A stretch of DNA of 64,000 bases from Macrostomum lignano. Lineage: Eukaryota. A model generated the notes under the pieces. That model did no database searches. It was not told the DNA's origin and was given only the letters and a program-made list of their open reading frames with translations. The position numbers and the translations under genes were made by a program. Within the stretch, counting starts at the first letter, position 1, and each line of letters opens with the position of its first letter. The stretch covers positions 248,001-312,000 of the forward strand of contig NIVC01000440.1 in the NCBI GenBank assembly GCA_002269645.1, written 5' to 3'. Below are positions 9,078 through 44,045 of the stretch, piece by piece.

Positions 9078-10045
9078 TGCTCAAGCTTGAAGGCAAGCCT
9101 GACGAAACTGAAGCAAATTGCAACTTAGATGTGGACTCAACTTAGAAGGATTTACAAGTGGAATAAAATATATGTCGATATGCTAGATAGCATAGTACAG
9201 CTTAACCATGACCATAAAATATATCCACACAGCTATATTCAAGTATATAGATTACAACTATCTTAAAGACTTTTATTTCAATAAAACATCATAAAGACAT
9301 AATCGCAAGGTCTTGAGTGCTTGAGTACTTAAGTACTTGAGTACTTGAGTACTTGAGTACTTGAGTACTTGAGTTAATTTGTTCATAAAGACGTAAGCGG
9401 ATGAATAGAAAACTATTTTATAATTTACAAGCAAATGTTCAATGTAAAAAAATAAATAGAATTTGGACATTTATAATTTTTTTGAGCACATGTAGAGATC
9501 ATGTACATGTAGAACTTAGTGAGCTCATACACGTACATATCCATACATTCATAATTGTCAATCCGGGGTCAGATATGGGTCATCTATGCAACGATTTGGA
9601 TTTTGAATTTCATCTGGGATTGAGTACCCCGAGACTCTTCGATTCGATAGGGCTGTCTATCTGAAATTAAATGTTATCGAAGTTATGGGATTACCTAGGA
9701 ATTGAGATTATCTCAGATTCAGAAATATGTTAGATTTGCAACTATAGGTCCAGGAGTTTAGATTATCAGGGATATTAAGGATGATCAGGGGGGCTTAAGA
9801 TTATCTTTGATTGAAGATTATCTGGGGTTCGGGAATATCTAGAGTTGGGGAATATCTGTGATTGGGGATTATCGTGCGTTGGGGATTATCTGGGGTTAGG
9901 AATTATTCAGAGTCGGGGATTATATGTGATAGGGGTTATTCGGGATCGATATTACCTGTAATCGGAAGTTCTTTGGGATTTTAAGTGTCTGGGATTTGAG
10001 ACCATCAATTTTCTTAGCAGTATTCCCCTGTAATCCTCAATTTAA

Positions 10046-13000
10046 TCAATCGCACCCCGCATTCGCAGTCAGCAGCCGCAGCGACACACTGCCATGCTCC
10101 GAAGCTCCGTAGCCGACAGCACTGTCGCCACTCAACATCTGACAGTCGATGCCGCTACCGCCGTCGCAGAAGCTGCCGCCGCCGCCGCCGCTGTCGGTGT
10201 AGTACAGCCCGGCCCCGCCGCCGCTGTAGCCGCCGCCGCCGCCCGCCGCTCCGTAGCACTCCTGCGTCGCGTCCGACTCCGTCGTGTAGCCGCCGCCGCC
10301 TCCGCCGCCGCCAAATCCGCCGTCACCGCCGCGGAGGTTGCCAGCTAGCGAGCCGTTGAACCCGCCGACGCCGCCAAGCCAGCCGTTGGCGAGGCCGCCG
10401 CCTCCGTCGCCGTCGATGGCGCTCCGACGCGGATTGACCGGCGAGCCGACGACCCAGCCAGCGCCGCAGCCGCCGTGGTTGCTGAAGTCGAGCTGGCTGG
10501 CTGTCGACATGCTGGCCGGTTCGTTGAACCCCGGCTGGCCGAGTGTGCCGCCCACGCCGTGGAAGCCGTCTCCTGTCGATGAGCCGTGCGAGTTGCTGCC
10601 GTTGCTGCTGCTGGTGCCGTGCATGCCTGGGGCGAGGGAGTCGGTGACATCTTCATCTTCATACTTCTCACGGCCTTATTCTTATTCTCGGCTTATGCCT
10701 CACTCATACCTCATTTTCTTTACTCCTCAAAGTTGTTTTAAGACGCAAAATCTTAAATTACAAATCTGATGTTCGAGCAGTATGGTTCTCTAGTCCAAAA
10801 ATCAAATCCAAAATTTAAAATCCCATGTGTCAACTCCCAAATTTAAAATCTCAAATCCCGAATCCCAACTCCCAAATCCCAAATCCCAAATTCCAAATTC
10901 CAAATCCCGAATTCCAAATACCAAATCCCAAATCTCTAATTCAAAATCCGAAATCCGAAGTCCCAATTCCCAAATCTCAAATCCCAAATCCCAGATTCCA
11001 AATCTCAAATCCAAAATCACAAATCCCAAATCCCTACTTCCAAATCCCGAATCTCAAATCCCATATCACAAATCCCAAATCCCTACTTCCAAATCCCGAA
11101 TCCCAAATCCCATATCACAAATCCCAAATCCCTACTTCCAAATCCCGAATCCCAAATCCCAACTCCCAAATCCCAAATTCCAACTCCCGAATTCCAAATC
11201 CCAAATCACAAATCCCTAATCCCAGATTCCAACTCCCGAATTCCAAATCCCAAATCCCAACTCCCAAATTCCAAATCTCAAATCCCAAACCCCAAATCCC
11301 AAATCCCAGATTCCAAATCCCAAATCCCAAACCCCAAATCCCAAATCCCAGATACCAAATCTCAAATCCCAAACCCCAAATCCCAAATCCCATTTAAAAT
11401 CTCACCGCCAGCCCAGTATGTGGCACCGCCGCCCCCGCCAGCGGCCAGGTACAACCTTGCTGGTTCGCCGTCGCCAGTGGCGCCTCTGTACACAAAGCTG
11501 CCGCCGCCGCCTCCGCCGCCTCGACTTCCGACGGCGCTGCCGGTGGCGCCTCCAGCCTGGCCGACCACTACAGACAGCTGGACGCCGATCGGGAAAACAA
11601 ATTTGCCAGTCGCCATGGCGCCGAGACCGCCGGGCTGGTTCTCCTCGAAGCTTCGACCGCCTTTGGCGCCGCGAGCGGTCAGCAGGTAGCAACCAGCCAC
11701 GGGTGTGGTGGCAGTTTGAACCGAGCCAGTGCGACCTGTGCTGCTGTCTGAGTGTGCCGATTGGATCAGATTAGAGTGGGATCAAAGTAGATGGGGATCA
11801 AAGTGAAACGTAATCAATATTCCCACATGTACGGCGCTTTGGATCATATCAGGATGGGATCCTATTGGGATCACATCGGGATGGGATCATATAGGGATGG
11901 GATCATATCGGGATGGGATCATATCGGGATGGGATCATATCGGGATGGGATCATATCGGGATGGGATCACATCGGGATGGGATCATATCGGGATGGGATC
12001 ATATCGGGATGGGATCATATCGGGATGGGGTCATATCGGGATGGGATCATATCGGGATGGGATCATATCGGGATGGGATCATATCGGGATGGGATCATAT
12101 CGGGATGGGATCATATCGGGATGGGATCATATCGGGATAGGATATCATACTCTCTGAGATCTCTTACTCGAAAAGTTCATATAGACGCTTTGACCGAGTA
12201 GATTTCGAAAATTCTCCTCCAGCCACACCTGGCTGCCGGAGTTTCCGAGTAGACGATGTTGGAAGCTGTGGGCAGGCGGGCTGTCTGCAAGGTTGCGTAT
12301 GATCACCAGTTGGCAGAGTTGGCCAGTCAGGACTGCGGCTGAGCACCCCAGTTGTCGACAGCGAGCTACGCAGTCGAGTTCCCGGTTGCCAGCAAAGCTG
12401 GTGACATTGATCACCTGGCTGCTGATTGTTGAGTCCAGCTCGAGCAAGGCGCTGCTTGACAGGCGGTAGTTGCGGCATCGAGTTGGTGAGGCTGCCAGGA
12501 CCAGAGTGACTGAAACTCGATAATTATTATAGATTGAGATTGATTGCTAATTCCATAATTAAGTAGTTAATTGAGCTAATTAAGGTAATTGACAACTTTC
12601 AATTTTCTGCACGGATTTTAGATTAGTTTTTGCGCAAGACATTTAGGTATGAAGAAGATGTAAATGGGTACATGTGCATGTAGATAAATATGTAAAGTAG
12701 AAAGAGATGCAGGTAGGAAGGTAGAGGTAGGTAGATAAGTGTACGTAGGCAGGATGGTAGGTACGTAGGTAAGTAGATAGATAATTGGGTAGCAGGTATA
12801 AGTATGCACTTGTGAGATATTTAGGTAGGTAGGTTCTTTGTTAGGTTGATAGGTTGGTAGGTAGGTAAGGTAGGCAGGTAGGCACTAAGGCAGGCAGGTA
12901 GGCAGGTAAGGTAGGCAAGTTGGTAGGTACGTAGGCAGGTAGGCAGGTAGATAATAGGTTAGATGCATGTGCAACTTACGCAGTTGGTTCGCACTCAAGA

Positions 13001-13052: not shown

Positions 13053-13579
13053 ACTCAAACGGCTTAGGACTCACAGTTTGGAGACTGCCTAAACAGCAGC
13101 AGCAGCAATGGGACGGAATTCTAAAACAAGTGGCTGCAGACAGTGTAATGAGCCGGAGCGGTGTGCCTAATAAAGGCATGGATTTTACTGCAGCTTATTA
13201 ATAATTCAAGTCGATTCGTGCATCCCTGGGCTCAATTTTTGCAATAAGACAGGGTTTTTTGACAATTTAATTTTTTGACGTTCTATACACAGGCTGGAGG
13301 GGCTGGGCTTTGATGGTATGGCTGCCTAAAAATAAATTAGTGCATATAAAAACACGTGTGTAGTATCCATATAGCTTAGCACTAAGCATTTGCAATTTTG
13401 TATTTCACTGCAGCTTTTCAACCCTGTGCAGGCTTGCATTTACCTCAGAAGAATGACGCCTAACTGGATGCCTGTATCGGCTGACCTTTAATTGAGACAT
13501 GTACATCATTCAGACGGAAGTGATGAAGTGAATTACCTTATTTAGTCTGACCTTAAGTATGAAGCTAACCCTAGTTCCT

Positions 13580-13980
13580 TACTGAGCCACTACATGTAGC
13601 TTACTGAGCCAATTAAATGTAGCTTACTGAGCTAACTACATGTAGCTTACTGAGCCAATTAAATGTAGCTTACTGAGCTAACTACATGTAGCTTACTGAG
13701 CTAATTACATGTAGCTTACTGAGCTAATTACATGTAGCTTACTGAGCTAATTACATGTAGCTTACTGAGCTAATTACATGTAGCTTACTGAGCTAATTAC
13801 ATGTAGCTTACTGAGCTAATTACATGTAGCTTACTGAGCTAATTACATGTAGCTTACTGAGCCAATTATATGTAGCTTACTGAGCTAACTACATGTAGCT
13901 TACTGAGCTAATTACATGTAGCTTACTGAGCCAATTACATGTAGCTTACTGAGCCAATTACATGTAGCTTACTGAGCTCA
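13580..13980. repeat. 23-bp minisatellite (tacatgtagcttactgagctaat)
   Basis: The period was measured between tacatg at 13683 and 13706. Confidence 0.92.
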
Positions 13981-14286
13981 GGTTATTAAGCTCAGCTAGC
14001 TCAGCCCTGCATTTTTTATAAATTAAACTTTTTAATAGATAAAGCCATCAAAAGCCATCTTTTTTATGCTCATTTTGTTTTATCAGCAGATGGATTCACT
14101 TCGTTTATTTTAAACTCTCAATATGGGGTTGATTCTTGCGCTCTCGATGCCGCAACTTGCCACCAAAATCACTGATCAAAATTGTCTCTTTTCATGTTGT
14201 TCGCTTTCCAGCTCTTAAGCAATGCTGAGATCAGTAGGTAGTTAGCTGGTTCGCAAGATTCGGTCGCTCCGACCAGTTCCAGTTAA

Positions 14287-14674
14287 TTAACAGCTGTAGC
14301 AGGGACAACGTTCGGCCACATAATTGCTGTAATAATTTTGTTCGCTGACGCAGTACCTGCGGTAGCGACCGCCTTGATGGATGCAGTGGATTGTACAGAT
14401 GATTTTCCAGGTGTTTCTGGGGTCTGAAAAAAACACAAATAGTTTACTGGGCATTGGTTATAGAAAGAGTTAGAAAGAATTTTGAAACATTTGCATCTTT
14501 AGTCCGACTCGAAAAACGGTTCAACTTACACACGACATTGCTGGGCAGGCGTCTCTTGTTGGCCAGGTGGTCGCTAGCGGCCGGATCAATCAGCGGATGG
14601 TTCCTGCTGATAGGTGAGGCACTAGAAGCAGCAAAGCCCAACAGACAGACGGTAGCAAGCAGCAGCAGATTCAT
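14287..14674 (-). CDS. Defensin-like cysteine-rich prepropeptide 1 (exons 14674-14530 and 14423-14287), 93 aa
   Basis: MNLLLLATVCLLGFAASSA / SPISRNHPLIDPAASDHLAN-KRR / LPSNVVYPRNTWKIICTIHCIHQGGRYRRYCVSEQNYYSNYVAERCPCYSC. Consensus GTAAGT donor and TTTTCAG acceptor, phase 1, with AATAAA downstream at about 14104-14109. Confidence 0.8.
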
Positions 14675-14890
14675 GCTAGCTATATCTTTCGAATTGAGAG
14701 GTTGCAGTTTTGCCAAGTTATCTTTGCGAGTGTTGGCTCCGCTCTCCCGGATCTGCCGCTCCGCTTAAAAACGCAGCCGGGAATCACGCGCCTGCCAAGT
14801 GCTGCGTCGGCGTTGCCAATCGTCGGCGCTGAAGCTGGATCGAGTTGGAAGCTCAAACAAACCTACACCAATTTCCATGAAGGTACCAGC

Positions 14891-21894: not shown

Positions 21895-22806
21895 AAGCTA
21901 CCAGTATTTTTAGTTTAATAATTCAAGTAACAATTAATTAATTTAATTATAAGCAGAAGCTACAAAAAAACTTGGAATATATCTTGGCCTAGGCTAGGTT
22001 TCATTTGCTTTATTTAATAGATAAATATCTGCAATAAAAGCTTAAGAGAATGCTTTTTGTTTGGTTAGGGCCTAATCCAGTTTTATTATAGTAGTACCTA
22101 TCTAAGATTTGTAGATCTAGGCCAGATACTATACCCAATTTCAATATTTATCATTATCATTACTAATAAGATATAGGCCCCCTATAGAAATCAGTGTTGG
22201 GCACCATTAATGAAAATCTAAACTTCCATTAATGGCAAAATAGTTGACTATAGTCTTGACTGTTTAACTAGTTTTAATGAATTTTTTCTATTTCTCTAAA
22301 TTAGTACACTCAATGGTTTAATACCAGGTACAATGCAAAATTGGATCCAAGTTCCAAGTTCAAGATGCAATTTGGAAGTCAGGATGTTGCATAGCATCCC
22401 TATTGCTAACCTTAGCCTAGGTTTCTTTTTTCTGGCACTAGTAGGATGCTAAATTGCATTAAGGTCTAACTTGAAGACACAATTTTGAAAGTCAAAATGC
22501 TATAGCATCCCTCTTGCACAAAAAATAAACTTATGTATTTAAAAATTGTTTTGTTGTAAATTACAGCAAGTTTAGGCCCTAATATATTATATATTAAAAT
22601 TTGTTAATGTCATTAATCTTCCTATTCTTATCATTTATAGGATAATTAAAAATTCACAATTGTAAAATTCTCAACTACTATATTTTTTATAATTGTGGCC
22701 ACAAGAGCAGTTGCTATCTGTAAGCATATGCAGTGAAAATTTCTGCAGAATAATCATCCATACATGTTTGCAGAAAATTGCATATAACCAACCAATAAGC
22801 AAATTA

Positions 22807-25609
22807 ATGGCTCTGCACCGACTTAGCTCAGCTTGCAATAGAATGTTTCTATCAGCATCAGTAGTGCAGACTGCCAGCGGACTACGCAGCCTGTCATCCG
22901 CAGGCGGACTGGCTGACAAATTCACCAAGGCGCAGTCAGCTCTGCAGCGGCTCACTGAGGATCCCGGCAATGCTGCCAAGCTGAAGATCTACAGCCTGTA
23001 TAAGCAGGCCACGGAGGGCAAGTGCACCAAGCCGAAGCCGGGATTCACCGATTTCGTTGGCCGAGCCAAATGGGACGCCTGGAGCGGCCTTGGGGACATG
23101 ACCAAGGATCAGGCTATGCAGCAGTACATTGACCTGGTGGAGTCCATGGGCGGCAAGCTGGATGCTCCCGATACTACTGCCGATACTACTAATCCCGCCG
23201 ATTCTAATACTGCGTCTGCTGATTATAAGGTACAAGCTTATTGATTGTGAAATATTTATTAAAATAACTGCATTTTTTGTTTTGCTGAAGATTTTCCTGT
23301 CTGAAGATTTTCTAATGACATTTCTCTGCAAGATTAGCTGTCATGCGCTCACTGATAGGCAGCTTGCTCTGTAGCTGGCGCCCCTCTGTAGCTGGCGCCC
23401 CTCTGTAGCTGGCGCCCCCTCTGTATCTGGCGCCCCTCTGTAGCTGGCGCCCCTCTGTAGCTGGCGCCCCTCTGTAGCTGGCGCCCCTCTGTAGCTGGCG
23501 CCCCTCTGTAGCTGGCGCCCCCTCTGTATCTGGCGCCCCTCTGTAGCTGGCGCCCCCTCTGTAGCTGGTGCCCCTTCTGTAGATGGCGCCCCTCTGTAGC
23601 TGGCGCCCCTCTGTAGCTGGCGCCCCCTCTGTAGCTGGCGCCCCTCTGTAGCTGGCGCCCCCTCTGTAGCTGGCGCCCCTCTGTAGCTGGCGCCCCCTCT
23701 GTATCTGGCGCCCCTCTGTAGCTGGCGCCCCCTCTGTAGCTGGTGCCCCTTCTGTAGCTGGCGCCCCTCTGTAGCTGGCGCCCCTCTGTAGCTGGCGCCC
23801 CCTCTTTATCTGGCGCCCCTCTGTAGCTGGCGCCCCTCTGTAGCTGGCGCCCCTCTGTAGCTGGCGCCCCTCTGTAGCTGGCGCCCCCTCTGTATCTGGC
23901 GCCCCTCTGTAGCTGGCGCCCCTCTGTAGCTGGCGCCCCTCTGTAGCTGGCGCCCCTCTGTAGCTGGCGCCCCCTCTGTATCTGGCGCCCCTCTGTAGCT
24001 GGCGCCCCTCTGTAGCTGGCGCCCCTCTGTAGCTGGCGCCCCTCTGTAGCTGGCGCCCCCTCTGTATCTGGCGCCCCTCTGTAGCTGGCGCCCCCTCTGT
24101 AGCTGGCGCCCCTCTGTAGCTGGCGCCCCCTCTGTAGCTGGCGCCCCCTCTGTAGTTGGCGCCCCTTCTGTAGATGGCGCCCCCTCTGTAGCTGGCGCCC
24201 CTCTGTAGTTGGCGCCCCCTCTGTAGCTGGTGCCCCTTCTGTAGATGGCGCCCCCTCTGTAGCTGGCGCCTTCTCTGTAGCTGGCGCCCCCTCTGTAGCT
24301 GGCGCCCCTTCTGTAGATGGCGCCCCCTCTGTAGCTGGCGCCCCTTCTGTAGATGGCGCCCCTCTGTAGCTGGCGCCCCCTCTGTAGATGGCGCCCCCTC
24401 TGTAGCTGGTGCCCCTTCTGTAGATGGCGCCCCCTCTGTAGCTGGCGCCTTCTCTGTAGCTGGCGCCCCCTCTGTAGCTGGCGCCCCTTCTGTAGATGGC
24501 GCCCCCTCTGTAGCTGGCGCCCCTTCTGTAGATGGCGCCCCCTCTGTAGCTGGCGCCCCCCTCTGTAGATGGCGCCCCCTCTGTAGCTGGTGCCCCTTCT
24601 GTAGATGGCGCCCCCTCTGTAGCTGGCGCCTTCTCTGTAGCTGGCGCCCCCTCTGTAGCTGGCGCCCCTTCTGTAGATGGCGCCCCCTCTGTAGCTGGCG
24701 CCCCTTCTGTAGATGGCGCCCCCTCTGTAGCTGGCGCCCCCCTCTGTAGCTGGCGGCCCCTCTGTAGCTGGTGCCCCTTTAGTTGGCGCTCCTGGATATA
24801 GGTGGATTAAGTTTTAACTACTTTAACTACTTCTAGCTACTAGTTGTAACAGTAAATTTAAGAACTATAAAAAAGGGTCCGAGCGAGGTCTGTTTTTACA
24901 TACGACATAATTATGTTTGCATGCACTCAAGGTTCAAATATCCGAATCTCAGTTACTGCAGCAATTCTCATTCGCATTGGTTTAAAAGACAATAAATGAA
25001 ACGTTGCATTTTTAGCACTAAAAGTTTGTTTTGTCTTTATTTTTTTGCCGTTACTTAAAACCAAGACCTAACATTAACAACATCTAAGGTCAATTGAGAG
25101 GATTCCAATATTTACAATATATAAAGATTGTTAAATTTTCATTTTGCTACTGTAAGTAGACGATTGCGCAGAAACTTAATTATGTATTTTTATTTACTTT
25201 CAGGAAGCTCTAGTATCCATCTCGCCTAGCGGGGTGCTTTGGTTCACCCTGAATCGGCCAGCCAAGAAGAATGCCATCTCAACCGATCTGTATGCTGAAT
25301 GGTCCAAAGCGATGGAGCAGGCCGCCGCTGACGACAAGGTCAAGGCTATGGTCATCACCGGTGCCGGGGAGTATTTCAGCTCCGGCAACGATTTGTCCAG
25401 CTTCACCAATTTAAAGCCCGGCGTCACCATGGAGCAGATGGCCGCCGATGGTAACGCCATTTTGCGTCGCTTTGTTGCGGCATTTATCGACTTCCCCAAG
25501 CCGTTGATTGCGCTGGTTAATGGGCCCGCGGTGGGCATCTCTGTGTCCACGCTGGGCCTGTACGATCAGGTGAGTCTTTTGAGAACTGGGCGCATTGGTT
25601 GGAAATGAG

Positions 25610-25662
<53 letters not shown>

Positions 25663-25678
25663 CGATAGATAGATAGGC

Positions 25679-25741
<63 letters not shown>

Positions 25742-25774
25742 CAGATAGATAGATAGATCGATAGATAGATAGGC

Positions 25775-25821
<47 letters not shown>

Positions 25822-27825
25822 CAGATAGATCGATAGACAGATAGATAGATAGATAGATAGATAGATGCAGACAGGTAGGTAGATAGTTAAGCTTTAACAA
25901 TAAAGTCAATTAACTTCCTAACTCCCTAATCGCAGGTGTTCGCCTCCGACTCAGCCACATTCCACATGCCATTCTCCTCGCTGGGCCAAACTCCCGAAGG
26001 CTGCTCCTCCTACACCCTGCCCCGCATCATGGGCCTGTCGGCTGCTGCCTCCCTGGTCATGTTCAACCGGAAGATCTCCGCCCAGGAGGCGCTGTCCTGC
26101 GGCCTCGTTAGCCGGGTCTTCCCGGCTGCCTCCTTCGCCGCCGAGGCCGGCGCCGCAGTTGAAGAGATTGCCGCCCTGCCCAGACAGGTGAGCGCCGGCC
26201 ATCTGCTAATTTTTGCTTAACCGATTTGTTCACTGGATGCACTGATCTCATTAATTCAATTTTCTGCTGCGGAGAGCTAGCTAGCGTAAAATTGTTTTCA
26301 GATTTTTAGAAGCCTACTGTTGTAACTTTTCTCTCTCCCTTCCTCTCCTATCTCCCTCTCTCCCTTCTCTCTTATCTCCCTCTCTCCCTTTCTCTCATAT
26401 CTCCCTTCTCTCTTATCTCCCTCTCTCCCTTCTCTCTTATCTCCCTCTCTCCCTTTCTCTCATATCTCCCTTCTCTCTTATCTCCCTCTCTCCCTTCTCT
26501 CTTATCTCCCTCTCTCCCTTTCTCTCATATCTCCCTTCTCTCTTATCTCCCTCTCTCCCTTCTCTCTTATCTCCCTCTCTCCCTTTCTCTCATATCTCCC
26601 TTCTCTCTTATCTCCCTCTCTCCCTTCTCTCTTATCTCCCTCTCTCCCTTTCTCTCATATCTCCCTTCTCTCTTATCTCCCTCTCTCCCTTCTCTCTTAT
26701 CTCCCTCTCTCCCTTTCTCTCATATCTCCCTTCTCTCTTATCTCCCTCTCTCCCTTCTCTCTTATCTCCCTCTCTCCCTTTCTCTCATATCTCCCTTCTC
26801 TCTTATCTCCCTCTCTCCCTTCTCTCTTATCTCCCTCTCTCCCTTTCTCTCATATCTCCCTTCTCTCTTATCTCCCTCTCTCCCTTCTCTCTTATCTCCC
26901 TCTCTCCCTTTCTCTCATATCTCCCTCTCTCCCTTCCTCTCCTATCTCCTTCTCTCCCTTCCTCTCCTATCTCCCTCTCTCCCTTCTCTCTTATCTCCCT
27001 CTCTCCCTTTCTCTCATATCTCCCTCTCTCCCTTTCTCTCATATCTCCCTCTCTCTCTCTCTCTCTCGCCTATCTCCCTCTCTCCCTTCTCTCTTATCTC
27101 CCTCTCTCCCTTTCTCTCATATCTCCTCTCTCCCTTCCTCTCCTATCTCCTTCTCTCCCTTCTCTCTTATCTCCCTCTCTCCCTTCCTCTCCTATCTCCC
27201 TCTCTCCCTTCCTCTCCTCTCTCCCTCTCTCCCTCTCTCTCCTATCTCCCTCTCTCCCTCTCTCTCCTATCTCCCTCTCTCCCTTCCTCTCCTATCTCCC
27301 TCTCTCCCTTCTCTCTTATCTCCCTCTCTCCCTTTCTCTCTTATCTCCCTCTCTCCCTTCTCTCTTATCTCCCTCTCTCCTTTTCTCTCATATCTCCCTC
27401 TCTCCCTTCCTCTCCTATCTCCTTCTCTCCCTTCTCTCTTATCTCCCTCTCTCCCTTCCTCTCCTATCTCCCTCTCTCCCTCTCTCTCCTATCTCCCTCT
27501 CTCCCTTCCTCTCCTATCTCCCTCTCTCCCTTCTCTCTTATCTCCCTCTCTCCCTTTCTCTCTTATCTCCCTCTCTCCCTTCTCTCTTATCTCCCTCTGT
27601 CCCTTTCTCTCTTATCTCCCTCTCCTTTCGTCTCCCATCTGCCTCTCTCCCTCTTCTATCTCTTTGCAGACGCTAATTTACGCCAAGCAGCTGTTGCGAG
27701 AGCCAATCAGAGCGGAGCTGCACGCCACTAACGAACGGGAGTGCAACCGGCTGCAGGAGCGCTGGATATCCGAGGACTGCTTCAATGCTGTGGCGAAATT
27801 TTTCTCGCGAAAGTCTAAGCTTTGA
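22807..27825 (+). CDS. ECI2: Enoyl-CoA delta isomerase 2 (ACBP + crotonase domains), 4 exons (22807-23229, 25204-25569, 25936-26187, 27670-27825)
   Basis: ACBP motifs [14 protein letters not shown] and GRAKWDAW; crotonase motifs [26 protein letters not shown] and [16 protein letters not shown]-terminal mitochondrial-like leader, C-terminal PTS1 -SKL, and three phase-0 GT-AG introns. Confidence 0.95.
23370..24790. repeat. 18/19-bp satellite (ctctgtagctggcgcccc), ECI2 intron 1
   Basis: Direct inspection. Confidence 0.95.
25609..25866. repeat. (GATA)n microsatellite, ECI2 intron 2
   Basis: Direct inspection. Confidence 0.97.
26329..27660. repeat. Polypyrimidine CT-rich tract with a 65-bp higher-order period in its first half, ECI2 intron 3
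   Basis: catat recurs at 26396, 26461 and 26526. Confidence 0.92.
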
Positions 27826-34103: not shown

Positions 34104-34604
34104 ATGCATTCGTCCACTACAATACTGGCAGCTTGCCTTGTGCTGGTGCTAATCAGCGTTGACTATCAGGGTGGCGGAGTTAGCGCCACACCTTTGGCTA
34201 ATAAACCTGGCGAGATACAAACTCACCAAGTCAACAAAAGAGTTTTCTGTAAGTAATAAAGCCAACTGGTTTCAGATTTTAATTTTGCCAGGCAGTCGAT
34301 CGATAAGCTAAGCCAACAACCCCACGCCGCGTGCTAAATGTACATTTAGCTGAGAATGTACAGATTGGAGGGTAGGCAGAAATTCTCTGCTATCTCACCC
34401 ACCTCCCCACTGCGCGCTGAATGTACATTGAATGTACACTCGGAACTTTAAATGCCAATTTCTACCTACTTTCCAGATTTTCACACGGTTTTTCGCTACT
34501 GCATCCGCCGTTGTCGTCAGCACTTTGGCGTCACCGCCGGCTGCGTTGGATACCTGAACATGCCTTTAGGCACCTGCGACTGCGTCTGTTCCAACTATCC
34601 TTGA
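34104..34604 (+). CDS. Defensin-like cysteine-rich prepropeptide 2 (exons 34104-34248 and 34477-34604), 90 aa
   Basis: MHSSTTILAACLVLVLISVDYQGGGVSA / TPLANKPGEIQTHQVN-KR / VFYFHTVFRYCIRRCRQHFGVTAGCVGYLNMPLGTCDCVCSNYP. GTAAGT donor, TTCCAG acceptor, phase 1, with ATTAAA downstream near 34651. Confidence 0.8.
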
Positions 34605-35178: not shown

Positions 35179-35825
35179 TAGGGTTGCCAACAATACCGTC
35201 CCCTATCAAGAGACAGGGGACGCCCACCAAGAGACAGGGGACGCCCACCAAGAGACAGGGGACGCCCACCAAGAGACAGGGGGCGCCCACCAAGAGACAG
35301 GGGACACCCGCCAAGAGACAGGGGACACCCGCCAAGAGACAGGGGACACCCGCCAAGAGACATGGATGTCCACCAAGAGACAGGGGGCGCCCACCAAGAG
35401 ACAGGGGACACCCGCCAAGAGACATGGATGTCCACCAAGAGACAGGGGACGCCCACCAAGAGACAGGGGACGCCCACCAAGAGACAGGGGACGCCCACCA
35501 AGAGACAGGGGCACCTATCAAGAGACAGGGACGACCACCAAGAGACAGGGGACACCCGCCAAGAGACATGGATGTCCACCAAGAGACAGGGGACGCCCAC
35601 CAAGAGACAGGGGGCGCCCACCAAGAGACAGGGGGCGCCCACCAAGAGACAGGGGACGCCCACCAAGAGACAGGGGCACCTATCAAGAGACAGGGACGAC
35701 CACCAAGAGACAGAGGACACCCGCCAAGAGACATGGATGTCCACCAAGAGACAGGGGCGCCCACAAAAAGACGGGCGCCCACCATGAGACTCGCATATTA
35801 GTGCCCCTAAGAGTTGCAAACCCTG
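35179..35825. repeat. 21-bp satellite (acgcccaccaagagacagggg) with higher-order variants, between imperfect hAT-like inverted ends
   Basis: Array at about 35205-35785. The ends tagggttgccaac and gttgcaaaccctg are imperfect complements; no 8-bp TSD. Confidence 0.85.
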
Positions 35826-36381: not shown

Positions 36382-39300
36382 ATGAAACCACTGAGCATTG
36401 TGGTCACAATTCAGGTGTGCCTGACTGTTGCTTTTCTTGTTTTAAACGGTAAGTTCAATTTATAAACTGTTTTTAATGAGGTAGTGACTTAATAAACAGG
36501 TAAATATTGTATTAGCAGTGGACTTAAATACCCACAGCATGGGTAGGAGTGGACCTAAATATCCACAGCATGGGCAGGAGTGGACCTAAATTCCCACAGC
36601 ATGGGTAGGAGTGGACCTAAATTCCCACAGCATGGGTAGCAGTGGACCTAAATACCCACAGCATGGGTAGGAGTGGACCTAAATTCCCACAGCATGGGTA
36701 GCAGTGGACCTAAATATCCACAGCATGGGTAGCAGTGGACCTAAATACCCACAGCATGGGTAGCAGTGGACCTAAATACCCACAGCATGGGCAGCAGTGG
36801 ACCTAAATACCCACAGCATGGGCAGCAGCGGACCTAAGTTACCCTCAACTCAAACGGTTTGTCAAACAGGTGTCGCAACCGCCAACCCGGCCAACGCTTC
36901 CAAGCCCCGAACCCCGCCGCCACCACCGCCGCCGCCGCCGGTGGTTCTGCCCTCGGTGCCGGGCGGTCGACGCTGCGTGTTCCCGTTCTGGTGGCACGGC
37001 AGGTGGCATCACACCTGCGTGCGGTACGACCTCAAAGGCGAAGAGTGGTGCTCAATCACTGCAAACTTCACTAAAGACGAAAATTGGATGCGGTGCGACA
37101 GTGAGTTGGGAAGTCACGTGACTGCTACGATGACGTCAGCCTGTTAGATATGAGCACTGAGTGTTATGATTGAGTCAGTCTGTTAGACAGAAGTGGTGAG
37201 CATAATGATATAAAGATTTTATTGCCTATATTCGCAATATTTTCCATTTCAGCAATTAATTTTTGTTGCCTAAAGCAAAAACGACAATTTTTGAAATGAG
37301 CTCAGCCGCTCGCAATCTGTTTCCGGTTCAACATCTTTTATCCCTAACTCTAATTGCATCCTGACGGCTATTCGAGAGAAGTGTTCGGTGCACCTTCCAT
37401 CTAATTAACTGGCAGATTAGTCAGAAATAAGGAGCTTTGTTTGAGACAGAGCGTGCCATTTCCGCAACCTTTTAAGCTTGGAAATCTGCAGGAAGTTTGA
37501 ACTCAGACCATCTTTGAGGCTGCTCAATGAAACGTGGGCGTGGGAAATTTCGATAATTTGTTTGATGTTGGCTCCCTTGAAAAGGAAATGCGTTATGCAT
37601 CACGTTTGGAGCGCTCAAAGTAGCTGCTTGAACTGCAAAACTTTACCTGTTAAATATTAAATTTCAAATTTTACAGGACAGATGCTTACCTGTTGCAAGA
37701 CAAGCCCTGAATTTTTATCGAAAAGAGGGGTAACTAGCCTAGTGGTTAGAGCGTCAGACTTACGACTGGAAGGACAGGTCGACCCATTCGAGACAATTTG
37801 TGTCCTTGAGCAAGACACTTAACTCTGCATTGCTTCAGTTCACCCAGCTGTAAATGGGTGCCAGCATTAGCTGGGGTAATTGAGGGTGTGTGTGGCGACC
37901 CCCCAGTCCTTGGACTGAACAGCCGTACACAGCCTTCAGATGATTTTTCACCTATTTTTCCCAGGCCACGACAAGAGCCGCTTCCACTGTCGCATTACGT
38001 TCGCCTACGGCGGCCGCCTGCACTACAGCTGCCTGCAACTGTCTATGGCCGGACCTACTCCCGTTGCTCCGGCGACCAGCGGCTTCTGGTGCGGCCTGAA
38101 AGCCTCGATCGCCTCGGTCAGCTGGTCGAGCAGAGACTGGGCCTTCTGCGAGTCCACCAACGCCACCACCGCTGACTATTTGAAGGCTGTCGGCTGGCAC
38201 CGGGGCCTGACGGGCGCCAGGCTGGAGGCGCTGCTCAAGATCGCTAGGCATCGGAATGCCGTGCAGAGCGAGGCCGCCGAGGTCGCGAGTTCGAATCACG
38301 CAGCGGCGGGAGCGGCAAAGGCGGTCGCAGCCAGCGATTCATCCGGTGGCGTCGAAGGCGGCGAGGGCGAGGGTGCCGGAGACGATGGCGGCAGCTCCAG
38401 GTGGGGCGTCGGCCTGGTTGTGTCGCTTGGTGTCGCCTGCGGCTTGCTGACCTTGGCGGTGGCCATCACCGGCTGCGCTGTGCACAGGCGCTACTTCAGG
38501 TGAGCTGGACGGCTGGCTCATTTCAGGAGCTTCGGCGGTGCCAGGGACGCATCACAGCTCTCTTGGTGGGCGCCCCTGTCTCTCTCGGTGGGCGCCCCTG
38601 TCTCTCTCGGTGGGCGCCCCTGTCTCTTGGTGGGCACCCCTGTCTCTCTTGGTGGGCGCCCCTGTCTCTCTCGGTGGGCGCCCCTGTCTCTCTTGGTGGG
38701 CACCCCTGTCTCTCTTGGTAGGCGCCCCTTTCTCTCTTGGTGGGCGCCCCTGTCTCTCTTGGTGGGCGCCCCTGTCTCTCTTGGTGGGCGCCCCTGTCTC
38801 TCTTGGTGGGCGCCCCTGTCTCTCTTGGTGGGCGCCCCTGTCTCTCTTGGTGGGCGCCCCTGTCTCTCTTGGTGGGCGCCCCTGTCTCTCTTGGTGGGCG
38901 CCCCTGTCTCCTGGTGGGCGCCCCTGTCTTTTGGTGGGCGCCCCTGTCTCTCTTGGTGAGCGCCCCTGTCTCTCTTGGTGGGCGCCCCTGTCTCTCTTGG
39001 TGGGCGCCCCTGTCTCCTGGTGGGCGCCCCTGTCTTTTGGTGGGCGCCCCTGTCTCTCTTGGTAGGCGCCCCTGTCTCTCTTGGTGGGCGCCCCTGTCTC
39101 TCTTGGTGGGCGCCCCTGTCTCTTGGTGGGCGCCCCTGTCTCTTGGTGGGCGCCCCTGTCTCTTGGTGGGCGCCCCTGTCTCTTGGTGGGCGCCCCTGTC
39201 TCTTGATTGGCGCCCCTGTCTCTTGATTGGCGCCCCTGTCTCTTGATTGGCGCCCCTGTCTCTTGATAGGCGCCCCTGTCTCTTGATAGGCGCCCCTGTC

Positions 39301-40194
39301 TCTTGATAGGCGCCCCTGTCTCTTGATAGGCGCCCCTGTCTCTTGATAGGCGCCCCTGTCTCTTGATTGGCGCCCCTGTCTCTTGATAGGCGCCCCTGTC
39401 TCTTGATAGGCGCCCCTGTCTCTTGATAGGCGCCCCTGTCTCTTGATTGGCGCCCCCGTCTCTTGATAGGCGCCCCTGTCTCTTGATTGGCGCCCCTGTC
39501 TCTTGATTGGCGCCCCTGTCTCTTGATAGGCGCCCCTGTCTCTTGGTGGGCGCCCCTGTCTCTTGGTGGGCGCCCCTGTCTCTTGGTGGGCGCCCCTGTC
39601 TCTTGGTGGGCGCCCCTGTCTCTTGGTGGGCGCCCCTGTCTCTTGGTGGGCGCCCCTGTCTCTTGGTGGGCGCCCCTGTCTCTTGGTGGGCGCCCCTGTC
39701 TCTTGGTGGGCGCCCCTGTCTCTTGGTGGGCGCCCCTGTCTCTTGGTGGGCGCCCCTGTCTCTTGGTGGGCGCCCCTGTCTCTTGGTGGGCGCCCCTGTC
39801 TCTTGGTGGGCGCCCCTGTCTATTGGTGGGCGCCCCTGTCTCTTGGTGGGCGCCCCTGTCTCTTGGTGGGCGCCCCTGTCTCTTGGTGGGCGCCCGTCTT
39901 TGGTTGGCGCCCCTGTCTTTTAGGCCAGTGGTGAGGGTGGCAAAGGTTGAGCTCACTGTCTTTTGTCGAGCCTGGCTGCCTCTTTCATTTAGTTTTTGGA
40001 GAAGCGCAGGTTTTGTGAGGCCGAATGAGGGGGGGGGGTCCCTGTACATGTACATGTATAACAGCGCCCAGTTTGTAACACAAATTTCAGAGGCCGGTAC
40101 AAGCGCGTCGACCCGCTTCTCACCTCTGACTCGATGGAGAGAAGCGGCTACGGAGGCGTCGATGCCTACCACGACTGACAATTACCGTTTCTAA
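36382..40194 (+). CDS. Type I membrane protein with two fibronectin type II-like modules, 4 exons (36382-36448, 36870-37100, 37965-38499, 39924-40194)
   Basis: Signal MKPLSIVVTIQVCLTVAFLVLNG, a proline-rich stalk, CVFPFWWHGRWHHTC...EWCSITANFTKDENWMRC (FN2 consensus), a second CRITFAYGGRLHYSC...FWCG module, and TM WGVGLVVSLGVACGLLTLAVAITGCAV followed by HRR. Intron phases 1, 1 and 2 are compatible. The last exon is the least certain. Confidence 0.72.
36515..36835. repeat. 31-bp minisatellite (gcagtggacctaaatacccacagcatgggta), FN2 gene intron 1
   Basis: Direct inspection. Confidence 0.9.
37726..37944 (+). mobile_element. tRNA-derived SINE (family 1) with a conserved-core-like central domain
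   Basis: A-box tagcctagtggttag and core gtgtccttgagcaagacacttaac...gcttcagttcacccagctgtaaatgggt. A second copy lies at about 51935-52085. Confidence 0.75.
38555..39920. repeat. 20/22-bp satellite (ggtgggcgcccctgtctctt), FN2 gene intron 3
   Basis: Same family as the 35.2-35.8 kb array, in opposite orientation. Confidence 0.95.
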
Positions 40195-41330: not shown

Positions 41331-41877
41331 TATTGAATGAAAGAATATTTCTGGCTTTTGACCTTATCATGAGAACTAAGCCATTTTTGAGTTGTTGATC
41401 GTGAAATCGTTATTCCTATTATATAAGCTAAATATGTTTTATTATCAAATCGAAGACAAAATATACAAAGCTCGTTTGTTGTAGTTCAATTTTAAAATTT
41501 CATTTGGGGAATTAATTAAAAGTATAAAAAACAATAATAATGTGGTCTTTTGAGTTCTTCTTGTAGTTTAACTCAGCTCAGAATATGCATACATGTACAT
41601 GGACGAGCTACATGTAAGTCGTCTTTGGCTAAACACCGTTGCATATCTGCCCCGAGCGTACACCGGTCACCAGCTCAACTTAGTTAAAGAGTAAACTGCA
41701 CTCGCAAGCCACTTTGCTTTTCAAACTTCTCAAGCCCGGTGAGCCCAACCCAAGTCTCTATTGTTCTCCTGGATTCAACGTGCGCGTTATGCACTGAGCT
41801 AGGCAGAAGACTGCGATATAAGCATTAGCTACTCTCTCTTGTGTGAGCTGCAAGCTAAGCTACAGCTCTATTCGATC

Positions 41878-44045
41878 ATGTCCACTGCCGAGCAGCTGAG
41901 CGAGGAAGAACTGGCTCTGTACAAAGCCGCCTTCGGCATCTTCGATCGGGACAGTGACGGGTCCATCACGGCGGCGGAGCTGGGCTCGGTGATGCGGTCA
42001 CTGGGGCGGCATCCTTCAGATGCCGAGATTAAGGTTAGTATACCTGCATGTCATATTTAATTAGTAGGTAAAAAACATTTCTTACAGGGAGCGTTTTACA
42101 AGCCCGAATCTTCACAGGGTTGAATCTTTACAAGCTCGAATCTTCACAAGATCGAATCTTCACAAGCTTGAATCTTCACAAGCTCGAATCTTCACAAGCT
42201 CAAATCTTCACAAACTCAAATCTTCACAAGCTCGAATCTTCACAAGCTCGAATCTTCACAAGCTCAAATCTTCACAAGCTCGAATCTTCACAAGCTCAAA
42301 TCTTCACAAGCTCGAATCTTCACAAGCTCAAATCTTCACAAGCTCAAATCTTCACAAGCTTGAATCTTCACAAGCTCGAATCTTCACAAGCTTGAAACTT
42401 AACGACACATTTCCGAAAAGTCTTGCTGGCCACTTTCGCTAGTTCACAACTTAAGATGAATTCAATATTATAAAATTTCGAACTTGTGAAGTTTTGAGAT
42501 TATAAAAAGCGAATCAAGGGCAACTTTATCACTCAGGATGGGAGTCTCGCAATTTATGGTGAAAAAATCACGAGGTTCGTTTAAATGCAGTGCAGTGTTC
42601 TATGGCCAAGCCGTACTGCAGATCCCACAGACACAAAATCACCGACGACAAGGCAAGGACTACACTAGTCAAAAAACACACAATTTTAGTACGAGCCAGC
42701 TACCCTGTTACTGCCGATTTTTAAATAATCTTTCAGTCCTGGGATCTCGCACATCATGTAACATGACCAAGACTTTCAAATTTCTCGTGTGCAAACCGAC
42801 CAAAAATTGAAAGCAAAAAATCGCTGCTGGGGAGAAAGTTTCCTATGGCTAAAAGATTTTAGATTGATTTAGTGCGAAGCCAGCGTCTGTGTTAAATCCT
42901 CACTTAGTGCAATGCTAGCAACAATATTCATTGACTGCTCAAGTACAGTCTGAAGCACTGTACATTGAATCGTATAGTACGATGGGTGTCCAGAGAAAGT
43001 TCTGACACTTTTAATCTCAGAGCAAAATGAATTCAGTCGCGGGTATTTTGATCATTTCACTCAAAAGAATAAAAAAATAAAAAGTGATATTGAATATTTT
43101 GTCCTCAAAAAAACGAATCATATTCATAAAGTCATATTCATCATCATCATCAACCCTCAAGGCAGCCTTCTCAACCTGTAGCAACACACACTTTTCCCAT
43201 TGCTTGAGCATTCTGTAACTTCGGCCTTCTTTCGATTGTAGACTCACGATGATGTCAATAATCATAAAAATAAAAAAAACTTGACTAATTAAGTAAACTT
43301 TCGCAAGGTGCAAACACAGTGAGATTTGCTTACGGAGTGTATAAAATACTCAACAGAGAAGGGGTGGACGGTAAGAGAGGGATGCACTGTACATCAGAGC
43401 CGTTTTGTGTACACTCGTACTTGCGTACTGCAAAGAAGATCCATAAAAAACTGACTAAGTTATGTTCTTCACCTTTTACTGTAAGACTATCAGTGACATT
43501 GCGATGGCTTTTCACACACATCACTTTTGAATGAAATGATCAAAATACACGCGACTGAATTCATTGGAAAGAAGAGACGTGCCGCTTAAAAATGACACTA
43601 ATCTGGGATTAAGCTAGTCAGAACTTTCCGGAAACACCTCGTACATTGTAGAATACCTCCTTTGGTCCTACTGTTTAATAATAAAGAGTCCCTGAAAACG
43701 CAGGAGATGATCAACGAGGTGGACGAGGACGACAACGGCAGCGTGGACCTGTCCGAGTTCCTCACCCTGATGCTGCGCAAAACCAGCGACGCGGATGCTG
43801 AAGAAGAGATCCGCGAGACTTTCCGCGTGTTCGACAGAGACGAGGACGGCTATTTGTCCGTCAAGGAGCTGCGTCACGTGATGTCCTGCCTGGGCGAGGA
43901 GGTCAGCGAAGTCGAGGCCGTGAAGATGCTGCTCACAGCCAAGGCGAAGAATGGCGGCGAGTCCGGCAGCGTCTCGAACTCCGAGGAGCTGCTGGTGAGC
44001 TTCGATGAGTTCCGAGCGTTGGCCACTGGCCAGAACTGGCCGTGA
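41878..44045 (+). CDS. Calmodulin-like protein, 2 exons (41878-42033 and 43704-44045), 165 aa; EF-hand 4 degenerate
   Basis: EF loops [24 protein letters not shown] and [12 protein letters not shown]; calmodulin-like [12 protein letters not shown] and [12 protein letters not shown]; phase-0 GT-AG intron. Confidence 0.9.
42100..42395. repeat. 16-bp minisatellite (ctcgaatcttcacaag), calmodulin-like gene intron
   Basis: Direct inspection. Confidence 0.92.

Follow-up and report, generated by a model that had tools for sequence, protein, structure and literature searches.

A predicted secreted six-cysteine peptide precursor of Macrostomum lignano with a cysteine framework compatible with a defensin scaffold

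The Mlig033545 gene and its copies

We analyzed a 64,000-nucleotide (nt) stretch of the Macrostomum lignano genome (positions 248,001 to 312,000 of the forward strand of contig NIVC01000440.1, assembly GCA_002269645.1; here the window, with position 1 its first letter) and, within it, a two-exon gene on the minus strand, BOX15_Mlig033545 (here Mlig033545), that encodes the precursor of a six-cysteine peptide. A preliminary description of this DNA, made from the sequence alone, had proposed a hidden defensin-like gene at 14287-14674, spliced between 14530 and 14423. When splicing and translation were redone, 14674-14530 and 14423-14287 joined across a GT..AG intron in phase 1 to give a 93-amino-acid (aa) precursor, which reproduces the proposed two-exon splice exactly. 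The spliced coding sequence (CDS) is 282 nt long (93 codons plus stop), and its product is MNLLLLATVCLLGFAASSASPISRNHPLIDPAASDHLANKRRLPSNVVYPRNTWKIICTIHCIHQGGRYRRYCVSEQNYYSNYVAERCPCYSC.

The gene was hidden in the sense that a prokaryote-style open reading frame (ORF) track had missed it, but it is already in GenBank as BOX15_Mlig033545. A search of 5.8 billion proteins returned BOX15_Mlig033545g3/g2 [Macrostomum lignano] (PAA82951.1/PAA63327.1), an entry named "hypothetical protein," at 100% identity over 93 aa, and the annotated CDS, spanning 388 nt equal to 14287-14674, is identical to the model given here. The GenBank locus around it, on NIVC01000440.1, agrees at 100% identity with window 4287-24674. 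The gene annotation of M. lignano was built from an RNA-seq transcript assembly (Wudarski et al., PMC5730564), and the splice junction, for which junction reads had been named as a check, therefore already has transcript-model backing. Mlig033545 is a real, transcribed, conserved, and already public gene and is not itself a discovery. Its origin as a chance ORF is ruled out by the annotation match, paralog conservation, and a shuffle test. The features of the gene are listed below.

14798-14817, minus strand: conserved upstream block GGCAACGCCGACGCAGCACT, kept between the promoters of the gene and of its paralog Mlig029134
14779-14791, minus strand: conserved upstream block GCGCGTGAYTCCC, kept between the same two promoters
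14764..14772, minus strand: TATA-like box GTTTTTAAG, ~25 nt upstream of the predicted transcript start; GTATTTAAG in the Mlig029134 promoter
14675..14747, minus strand: predicted 5' untranslated region (UTR), ~73 nt
14530..14674, minus strand: coding exon 1, 145 nt, ATG at 14674; same as the annotated CDS of BOX15_Mlig033545
14618..14674, minus strand: predicted signal peptide, residues 1-19, MNLLLLATVCLLGFAASSA; SignalP 4.1 "Y" for the exact protein
14549..14617, minus strand: predicted propeptide, residues 20-42, SPISRNHPLIDPAASDHLANKRR, 23 aa, ending in a dibasic site
14424..14529, minus strand: intron, 106 nt, GTAAGT...TTTTTTTCAG (CAG end), phase 1, splitting the Tyr49 codon into T and AC
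14287..14423, minus strand: coding exon 2, 137 nt including the TAA stop at 14289-14287; encodes the six-cysteine domain
14286 to ~14085, minus strand: 3' UTR, with a predicted transcript end
14104..14109, minus strand: AATAAA poly(A) signal, read from the sequence; ATTAAA at the aligned place in Mlig029134

The flanking elements were compared in an alignment of the window with the third copy of the gene (NIVC01001338.1) and the locus of the paralog Mlig029134. The annotated 5' end of the Mlig029134 transcript (GGAGAGC) aligns to window ~14747, ~25 nt past the TATA-like box, which would act as a promoter element of Mlig033545; the 5' end of the UTR is placed from the annotated partial CDS and transcript start of the paralog. 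The sequence flanking the two upstream blocks has diverged between the paralog promoters, and the blocks are candidate shared regulatory elements. With promoter and transcript ends predicted in this way, Mlig033545 looks like a small stand-alone transcription unit of ~0.66 kb. A scan for bacterial promoters and terminators was empty, which is irrelevant to a eukaryotic gene. Beyond the gene, a 23-bp minisatellite at 13578-13978 (17.5 copies, 94% matches) starts ~110 nt past the poly(A) signal.

M. lignano DV1 has duplicated chromosomes, and Mlig033545 is present in three near-identical homeologous copies. The CDS is identical on NIVC01000440.1 and NIVC01001855.1. The third copy (NIVC01001338.1, positions 10001-10386 of the extracted locus, PAA69241.1) carries seven exonic substitutions, five of them non-synonymous, and three of these (K13E, N36K, and A43D) alter the charge of the mature peptide; the substitutions are too few for a selection test.

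The precursor, its paralogs, and a look-alike neighbor

The preliminary description had read the product as a signal peptide, a propiece, KRR, and a 51-aa cationic peptide with the pattern C-x3-C-x10-C-x14-C-x-C-x2-C. Translation reproduced this order, and the pattern was found exactly as claimed, with cysteines at residues 16, 20, 31, 46, 48, and 51 of the 51-aa peptide that follows KRR (spacings 3, 10, 14, 1, and 2). This peptide contains CTIHCIHQGG, has six K/R, two E, and two H, and is rich in Tyr (7/51 residues). Every numerical detail of the description was correct, and its interpretation is partly supported. The exact protein is fAMP-LP 530 in file S5 of the helminth screen of Irvine et al. 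2023 (PMC10414684), where SignalP 4.1, one of the checks that had been proposed, was positive. Signal cleavage probably falls after Ala19, judging from the SignalP-derived start of the paralog Mlig016290 (SAISRN...) and the -3/-1 rule.

Three clear paralogs, Mlig033545, Mlig029134, and Mlig016290, all keep the six cysteines and the AERCPC motif. Mlig029134 (PAA77978.1, PAA91838.1) is 54% identical to Mlig033545 and keeps AERCPCxSC; its intron lies at the same position, in the same phase, and splits the same Tyr codon, with a length of 85 nt versus 106 nt, and the two genes share 64 aligned intron matches versus 199/282 CDS matches. The intron position was comparable for Mlig029134, and Mlig016290 was compared as a protein. 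The latter, taken from file S5 of the same screen (PMC10414684), reads MKILLVAITICLLVFAATSASAISRNRPLVQPVAKADHLAIKRLANRVTYSWTFVCNLYCRILGGRYSRRCVRNYATTVLAERCPCFCYK, has the framework C-x3-C-x10-C-x12-C-x-C-x-C, and in a tblastn search of the window aligns to exon 2 with E=1.8e-8. Invariant positions in a five-sequence alignment are ISRN, H36, and K40-R in the propeptide region, followed by Y49 (the residue whose codon the intron splits), W54, G66, Y69, ERCPC, and the six cysteines. ISRN, H36, K40, and the following Arg are thereby constant in all three paralog groups. The resulting family signature is present in Mlig033545: a signal peptide, an ISRN propeptide, K-R, a Tyr codon split in phase 1, and W-x3-C-x3-C-x3-G-x2-Y-x3-C...ERCPC-x(1,2)-C. 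The grouping of Mlig033545, Mlig029134, and Mlig016290 as one family, for which these alignments argue, is new.

Relative to Mlig029134, the overall ratio of non-synonymous to synonymous divergence (dN/dS, Nei-Gojobori) is ~0.36. In this one pairwise comparison dN is 0.18 for the signal peptide and propeptide and 0.49 for the mature part. Secreted effector peptides usually show this contrast between a conserved leader and a mature region that evolves faster.

To look for relatives outside M. lignano, we used a word-indexed search of 5.8 billion proteins, which found none, and a complete HMMER run over 1.84 billion cluster representatives, which found only family members and one artifact. So far, every family member in the libraries searched comes from M. 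lignano. The artifact was P0006, a 1,170-aa tandem-repeat translation with E=1e-11 to the family profile, which was rejected as the sum of ~20 weak repeat matches; such sums are an artifact to expect with short cysteine-rich queries.

When all six frames were scanned for the cysteine framework, a single further match came up in the window (34500-34589, plus strand), within an annotated gene ~20 kb away.

34104-34248 and 34477-34604, plus strand: exons 1 and 2 of BOX15_Mlig034330g3 (PAA82953.1; here Mlig034330), 90-aa product

The six-cysteine regular expression has two matches in the window against 0.003 per window in composition-preserving shuffles, a comparison to be read with the fact that the expression was widened post hoc to cover both Mlig033545 and Mlig034330. 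Like Mlig033545, Mlig034330 has a signal peptide, a propeptide, NKR, and a phase-1 intron that splits a Tyr codon (T and AT) just after KR. Its framework is C-x3-C-x9-C-x10-C-x-C-x-C, with no N-terminal cysteine and with an extra C-terminal cysteine placed as in Mlig016290. The presence of this same unusual framework in a neighbor ~20 kb off is also new. Sequence homology between Mlig033545 and Mlig034330 is insignificant (BLASTP E=5.2; hhalign 0.5-0.9%, aligning only H-x-x-N-K-R), and on the shared architecture we regard Mlig034330 as a probable distant family member. UniProt names its product [quoted passage not shown] a label uncorroborated by Pfam and by hhalign against defensins (0.3-0.5%).

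Between the two genes lies one annotated gene, at 22783-27825 on the plus strand, encoding a 406-aa ECI2-like protein with ACBP and enoyl-CoA hydratase/isomerase domains. The accession numbers suggest that the order Mlig033545-Mlig034330 is the same in the three homeologous copies. The span of the intervening gene includes an 18-bp minisatellite repeated 80 times (23367-24789), a (TAGA)n tract (25610-25886), and a CT-rich 24-bp array (26331-27652), all presumably intronic. Downstream of Mlig034330, 41866-44045 on the plus strand is the annotated gene for a 169-aa EF-hand protein with weak AIF-1-like matches.

Comparison with defensin and ShK folds

Cysteine-stabilized αβ (CSαβ) peptides are defined by two parallel disulfides that run from a helix to the last strand (PMC7203481). 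One possibility, raised by the preliminary description and in our view open to considerable doubt, is that Mlig033545 encodes a true descendant of these cis-defensins. CxxxC would then lie on a helix, with parallel bonds linking it to CxC on the last strand. A third disulfide, rewired after loss of the N-terminal cysteine, might join Cys31 of beta-2 to the new C-terminal Cys51, and the peptide might be an antimicrobial or ion-channel-active defensin; we hold both of these proposals to be as tentative as the descent itself.

The spacings are in keeping with such a scaffold. CxxxC (C16-x3-C20) and CxC (C46-x-C48) are the sole invariant cysteine spacings across four groups including Mlig034330. 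When the family was aligned by hhalign to the mussel defensin MGD-1, its six cysteines fell on Cys10, 14, 25, 33, 35, and 38, the only gap being 7 residues long (P=4e-4, probability 35%). The disulfides of MGD-1 are Cys4-25, 10-33, 14-35, and 21-38. Its N-terminal Cys4 and loop Cys21 have no counterpart in the family, and because these two partner Cys25 and Cys38, a pairing of the two orphaned cysteines would be coherent. The same alignment bears out the earlier statement that the N-terminal cysteine is missing and a C-terminal one gained: none of the four groups has a cysteine between KR and CxxxC, and a C-terminal cysteine is present instead. The order signal, propeptide, KR, and mature peptide also matches that of insect and mollusc defensin precursors. 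The cysteine framework is therefore compatible with a CSαβ scaffold lacking the N-terminal cysteine, in which the beta-2 cysteine would pair with the new C-terminal one.

A direct comparison was made with MGD-1, whose sequence was confirmed against PDB 1FJN, and with those CSαβ peptides of the ASABF/mytilin type that have a CxCxxC ending. The M. lignano product is alike in having a signal peptide and a processed cysteine-rich mature peptide, and it shares with MGD-1 the CxxxC, a cysteine 10 residues later, and an R-C-x-C-Y-x-C C terminus. It differs in lacking Cys4 and Cys21, so that two of the four MGD-1 disulfides are impossible as such, and in having 12-14 residues in the loop before CxC across the family, against 7 in MGD-1. 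It also lacks the glycine of the GxC gamma-core, shows no similarity beyond the cysteine framework, and, from weak models and residue propensities, has no support for a helix at CxxxC.

A second likeness is to insect defensin A (PF01097), in which Cys16, Cys20, and Cys30/31 occupy nearly the same residue numbers. The two peptides share a local xxC-x-x-H-C-x-x-x-G-x-R, and hhalign against nine PF01097 members placed IICTIHCIHQGGR on SACAAHCLLRGNR, at residues 14-26 in both. That score was reached by 0/300 full-column shuffles and by 3% of shuffles in which the cysteines were fixed, but the hhalign probability against insect defensins is 1.5-4.8%. The M. lignano peptide, moreover, has no Pfam match, lacks the N-terminal Cys3, has a hairpin loop of x14 versus x5, and carries the extra C-terminal cysteine. 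UniProt applies an invertebrate-defensin profile name to the neighboring Mlig034330 product, which favors the relationship, but not to Mlig033545.

Several further results speak against CSαβ descent. The MGD-1 score was reached by 12.8% of cysteine-fixed shuffles, so that the alignment reflects the cysteine framework alone; across the column-shuffle controls on the hhalign comparisons, only that framework survives. Neither the precursor nor any of the four mature peptides matched a Pfam model, Defensin_2 included, at E<=10. Run against PDB chains with the same cutoff, the family profile picked up no defensin, whereas MGD-1 alone picks up 12 other CSαβ defensins (scorpion, oyster, tick, and fungal) at E<0.01, so that true members do find one another; a PDB sequence search with the peptide alone gave no relevant match. 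Two AlphaFold2 models, one of the 44-aa exon-2 peptide built with two sequences and one of the 51-aa peptide built with three (pLDDT 56.7 and 62.3, both too weak to refute the fold), put CxxxC not on a helix but on a strand, the first of a hairpin that turns at GG, which leans away from the structure that had been anticipated. Their short helix, at low pLDDT, lies at NYVAER just before CPC. Foldseek with the better model returned no PDB match at E<=0.001. Residue propensities agree with the models: Ile, Thr, Tyr, and Phe are abundant in the CxxxC segment, which by Chou-Fasman favors strand in the four M. lignano groups (Pa-Pb of -0.18 to -0.32), whereas seven correctly scored defensins are neutral or favor helix, at -0.04 to +0.32 (the MGD-1 line, for which the wrong CxxxC had been picked, was left out). 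Finally, 33 flatworm species, including this proteome, have been searched with CSαβ hidden Markov models (HMMs) and BLAST, and it was concluded that flatworms lack CSαβ peptides (PMC10414684).

The defensin-like reading thus stands in part: CxxxC and CxC are invariant and the six cysteines can be laid on MGD-1, but no defensin profile matches and the similarity is that of the cysteine framework. For now, the family cannot be classified with the defensins. We would nonetheless entertain, as a proposal more likely wrong than right, that Mlig033545, its paralogs, and Mlig034330 form the first CSαβ lineage in Platyhelminthes, too diverged for profiles, with rewired disulfides and a C-terminal cysteine that slides between CxCxC and CxCxxC.

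A different fold is implied by the automatic UniProt name of A0A267ER24, one of two near-identical entries, "ShKT domain-containing protein." An ShK-toxin-like (ShKT) domain would be helical with 1-6, 2-4, 3-5 pairing, as ShK is, and might block potassium channels. Both this peptide and ShK (verified as PDB 1ROO) are six-cysteine secreted domains ending in C-x2-C, and hhalign lines up Cys16, 20, and 31 with ShK Cys12, 17, and 28 across one gap, but at a probability of 0.2% (P=0.26), and both spacings and profile differ. The spacings are 8, 4, 10, 3, and 2 in ShK versus 3, 10, 14, 1, and 2 in Mlig033545, and the ShK-defining C-x3-C-x2-C end reads C-x-C-x2-C in Mlig033545 and C-x-C-x-C in Mlig016290. 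Pfam ShK (PF01549) has no match at E<=10; the sister UniProt entry, which differs by five residues, is called "Uncharacterized," and the neighbor Mlig034330 carries the other automatic name. We regard the ShKT label as a borderline automatic match that is close to refuted, and such a domain here as highly improbable. UniProt automatic names for peptides of this kind ("ShKT" here, "invertebrate defensin" next door) are unreliable.

Possible roles of the secreted peptide

Our preferred proposal, to which we give a probability of roughly 0.45, is that Mlig033545 encodes a secreted, probably KR-processed, three-disulfide effector peptide that most plausibly serves host defense. The 19-aa signal peptide would send the product into the secretory pathway, where a prohormone-convertase or kexin-type protease would probably cut at the invariant Lys-Arg that ends the conserved 23-aa propeptide. 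Cleavage there would free a C-terminal peptide of ~50 aa. Its six invariant cysteines would form three disulfides, and the peptide may act outside the cell as an effector, with an antimicrobial role as the first choice. Host defense is the leading guess because of the defensin-like precursor layout, the pattern of conserved leader and variable mature part, and the multi-copy, lineage-restricted family.

A number of observations weigh against this proposal. Net charge is +4 in this copy, +2 in the third copy, and +1 in Mlig029134, so that the cationic character described earlier, correct for this copy (six K/R, two E), is unconserved and drops in close relatives, which weakens a classical cationic reading as an antimicrobial peptide (AMP). 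The models, propensities, PDB profile search, and shuffles together point mildly away from a CSαβ fold. ProP 1.0, as run in the published screen, missed the KR(R) site that it had been expected to find and called RYRR inside the cysteine domain (PMC10414684 file S5). RYRR is a furin-type R-x-R-R motif at residues 68-71 (given as window 14465-14476). It was rejected as a true processing site: its place is between Cys20 and Cys31, and the paralogs do not keep it (RYYYSR, RYSRR), so the call is considered a false positive and the site is probably unused. The K-R, invariant across paralogs and present in the neighbor as well, is more likely to be the cleavage site.

The record of that screen bears on the antimicrobial proposal (all from PMC10414684). 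fAMP-LP 530 was dropped at pipeline step "Ungrouped," with a single ProP 1.0 site, and 54.5% of 11 AMP predictors were positive, so that an AMP-like character had been noted; but the prediction concerned the 22-aa fragment YCVSEQNYYSNYVAERCPCYSC produced by the RYRR cut, and AMP predictors are, by the authors' own word, weak evidence. Group 60 (Mlig016290), with 90.9-100% of predictors positive, was dropped as longer than 60 aa, and group 149 (Mlig034330), with 54.5%, was dropped as "Same genome." The three groups 530, 60, and 149 were left unlinked, and none was synthesized, as only linear peptides were chosen. The same work reported flatworms to be without every classical lophotrochozoan AMP family, an absence that its authors called surprising. 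We found no Macrostomum defensin or AMP paper in the literature searched. For Mlig033545 itself we found no expression-site, induction, peptide-level, or activity data, and its gene IDs turned up neither in the full texts searched nor in the searched supplements of four M. lignano papers, which likewise leaves the host-defense proposal the weaker.

The most serious functional alternative, which we consider unlikely but worth keeping in view, is that the peptide has no part in immunity and comes from the reproductive or another gland (prostate or seminal fluid, eggshell, adhesive, rhabdite, or mucus). It would then be a secretory protein that is specific to the lineage, evolves fast, and either acts on the mating partner or serves as extracellular material. 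PMC7336406 links many fast-evolving, lineage-specific secreted proteins of M. lignano to reproduction and reports reproduction-related Macrostomum genes as fast-evolving, and a non-immune secretory role is therefore to be taken seriously at the expense of host defense. Lineage restriction in the libraries searched would fit such a product, as would a mature part that diverges from Mlig029134 faster than the signal peptide and propeptide, the unconserved charge, and the Tyr content. There is, on the other side, no positive evidence for any tissue, and the gene was not found in the searched supplements of a seminal-fluid in situ screen and of reproduction-related gene lists, which is a weak argument. 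Less probable still, and in our estimate improbable outright, is a signaling peptide, that is, the precursor of a disulfide-rich neuropeptide, hormone, or pheromone that is cut at KR and acts on a receptor. A signal peptide and propeptide ahead of an invariant dibasic site and a C-terminal peptide would be expected of such a precursor, but the family matches no known hormone family in Pfam or PDB, it lacks an amidation signal, and the mature parts of the paralogs diverge quickly, as those of receptor ligands seldom do.

Should the CSαβ fold prove true, the reported gap in flatworms would be closed, the conclusion of PMC10414684 overturned, and a rewired defensin disulfide documented, showing how a defensin scaffold can put up with having one entire disulfide exchanged. 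Should the fold be another, the family would represent a disulfide-rich scaffold that is new, in a model animal open to genetic work (transgenesis, RNA interference) in which its role is directly testable.

The window as a whole holds >20 minisatellite arrays, which fits the reported 15% content of simple and tandem repeats in this genome. Two of them, at 38559-39918 and 35207-35790, are GC-rich, with 20-bp and 21-bp units (TCTCTTGGTGGGCGCCCCTG versus CAAGAGACAGGGGACGCCCAC) that look reverse-complementary. These two arrays may be one repeat family in opposite orientations flanking the 36-38 kb region.

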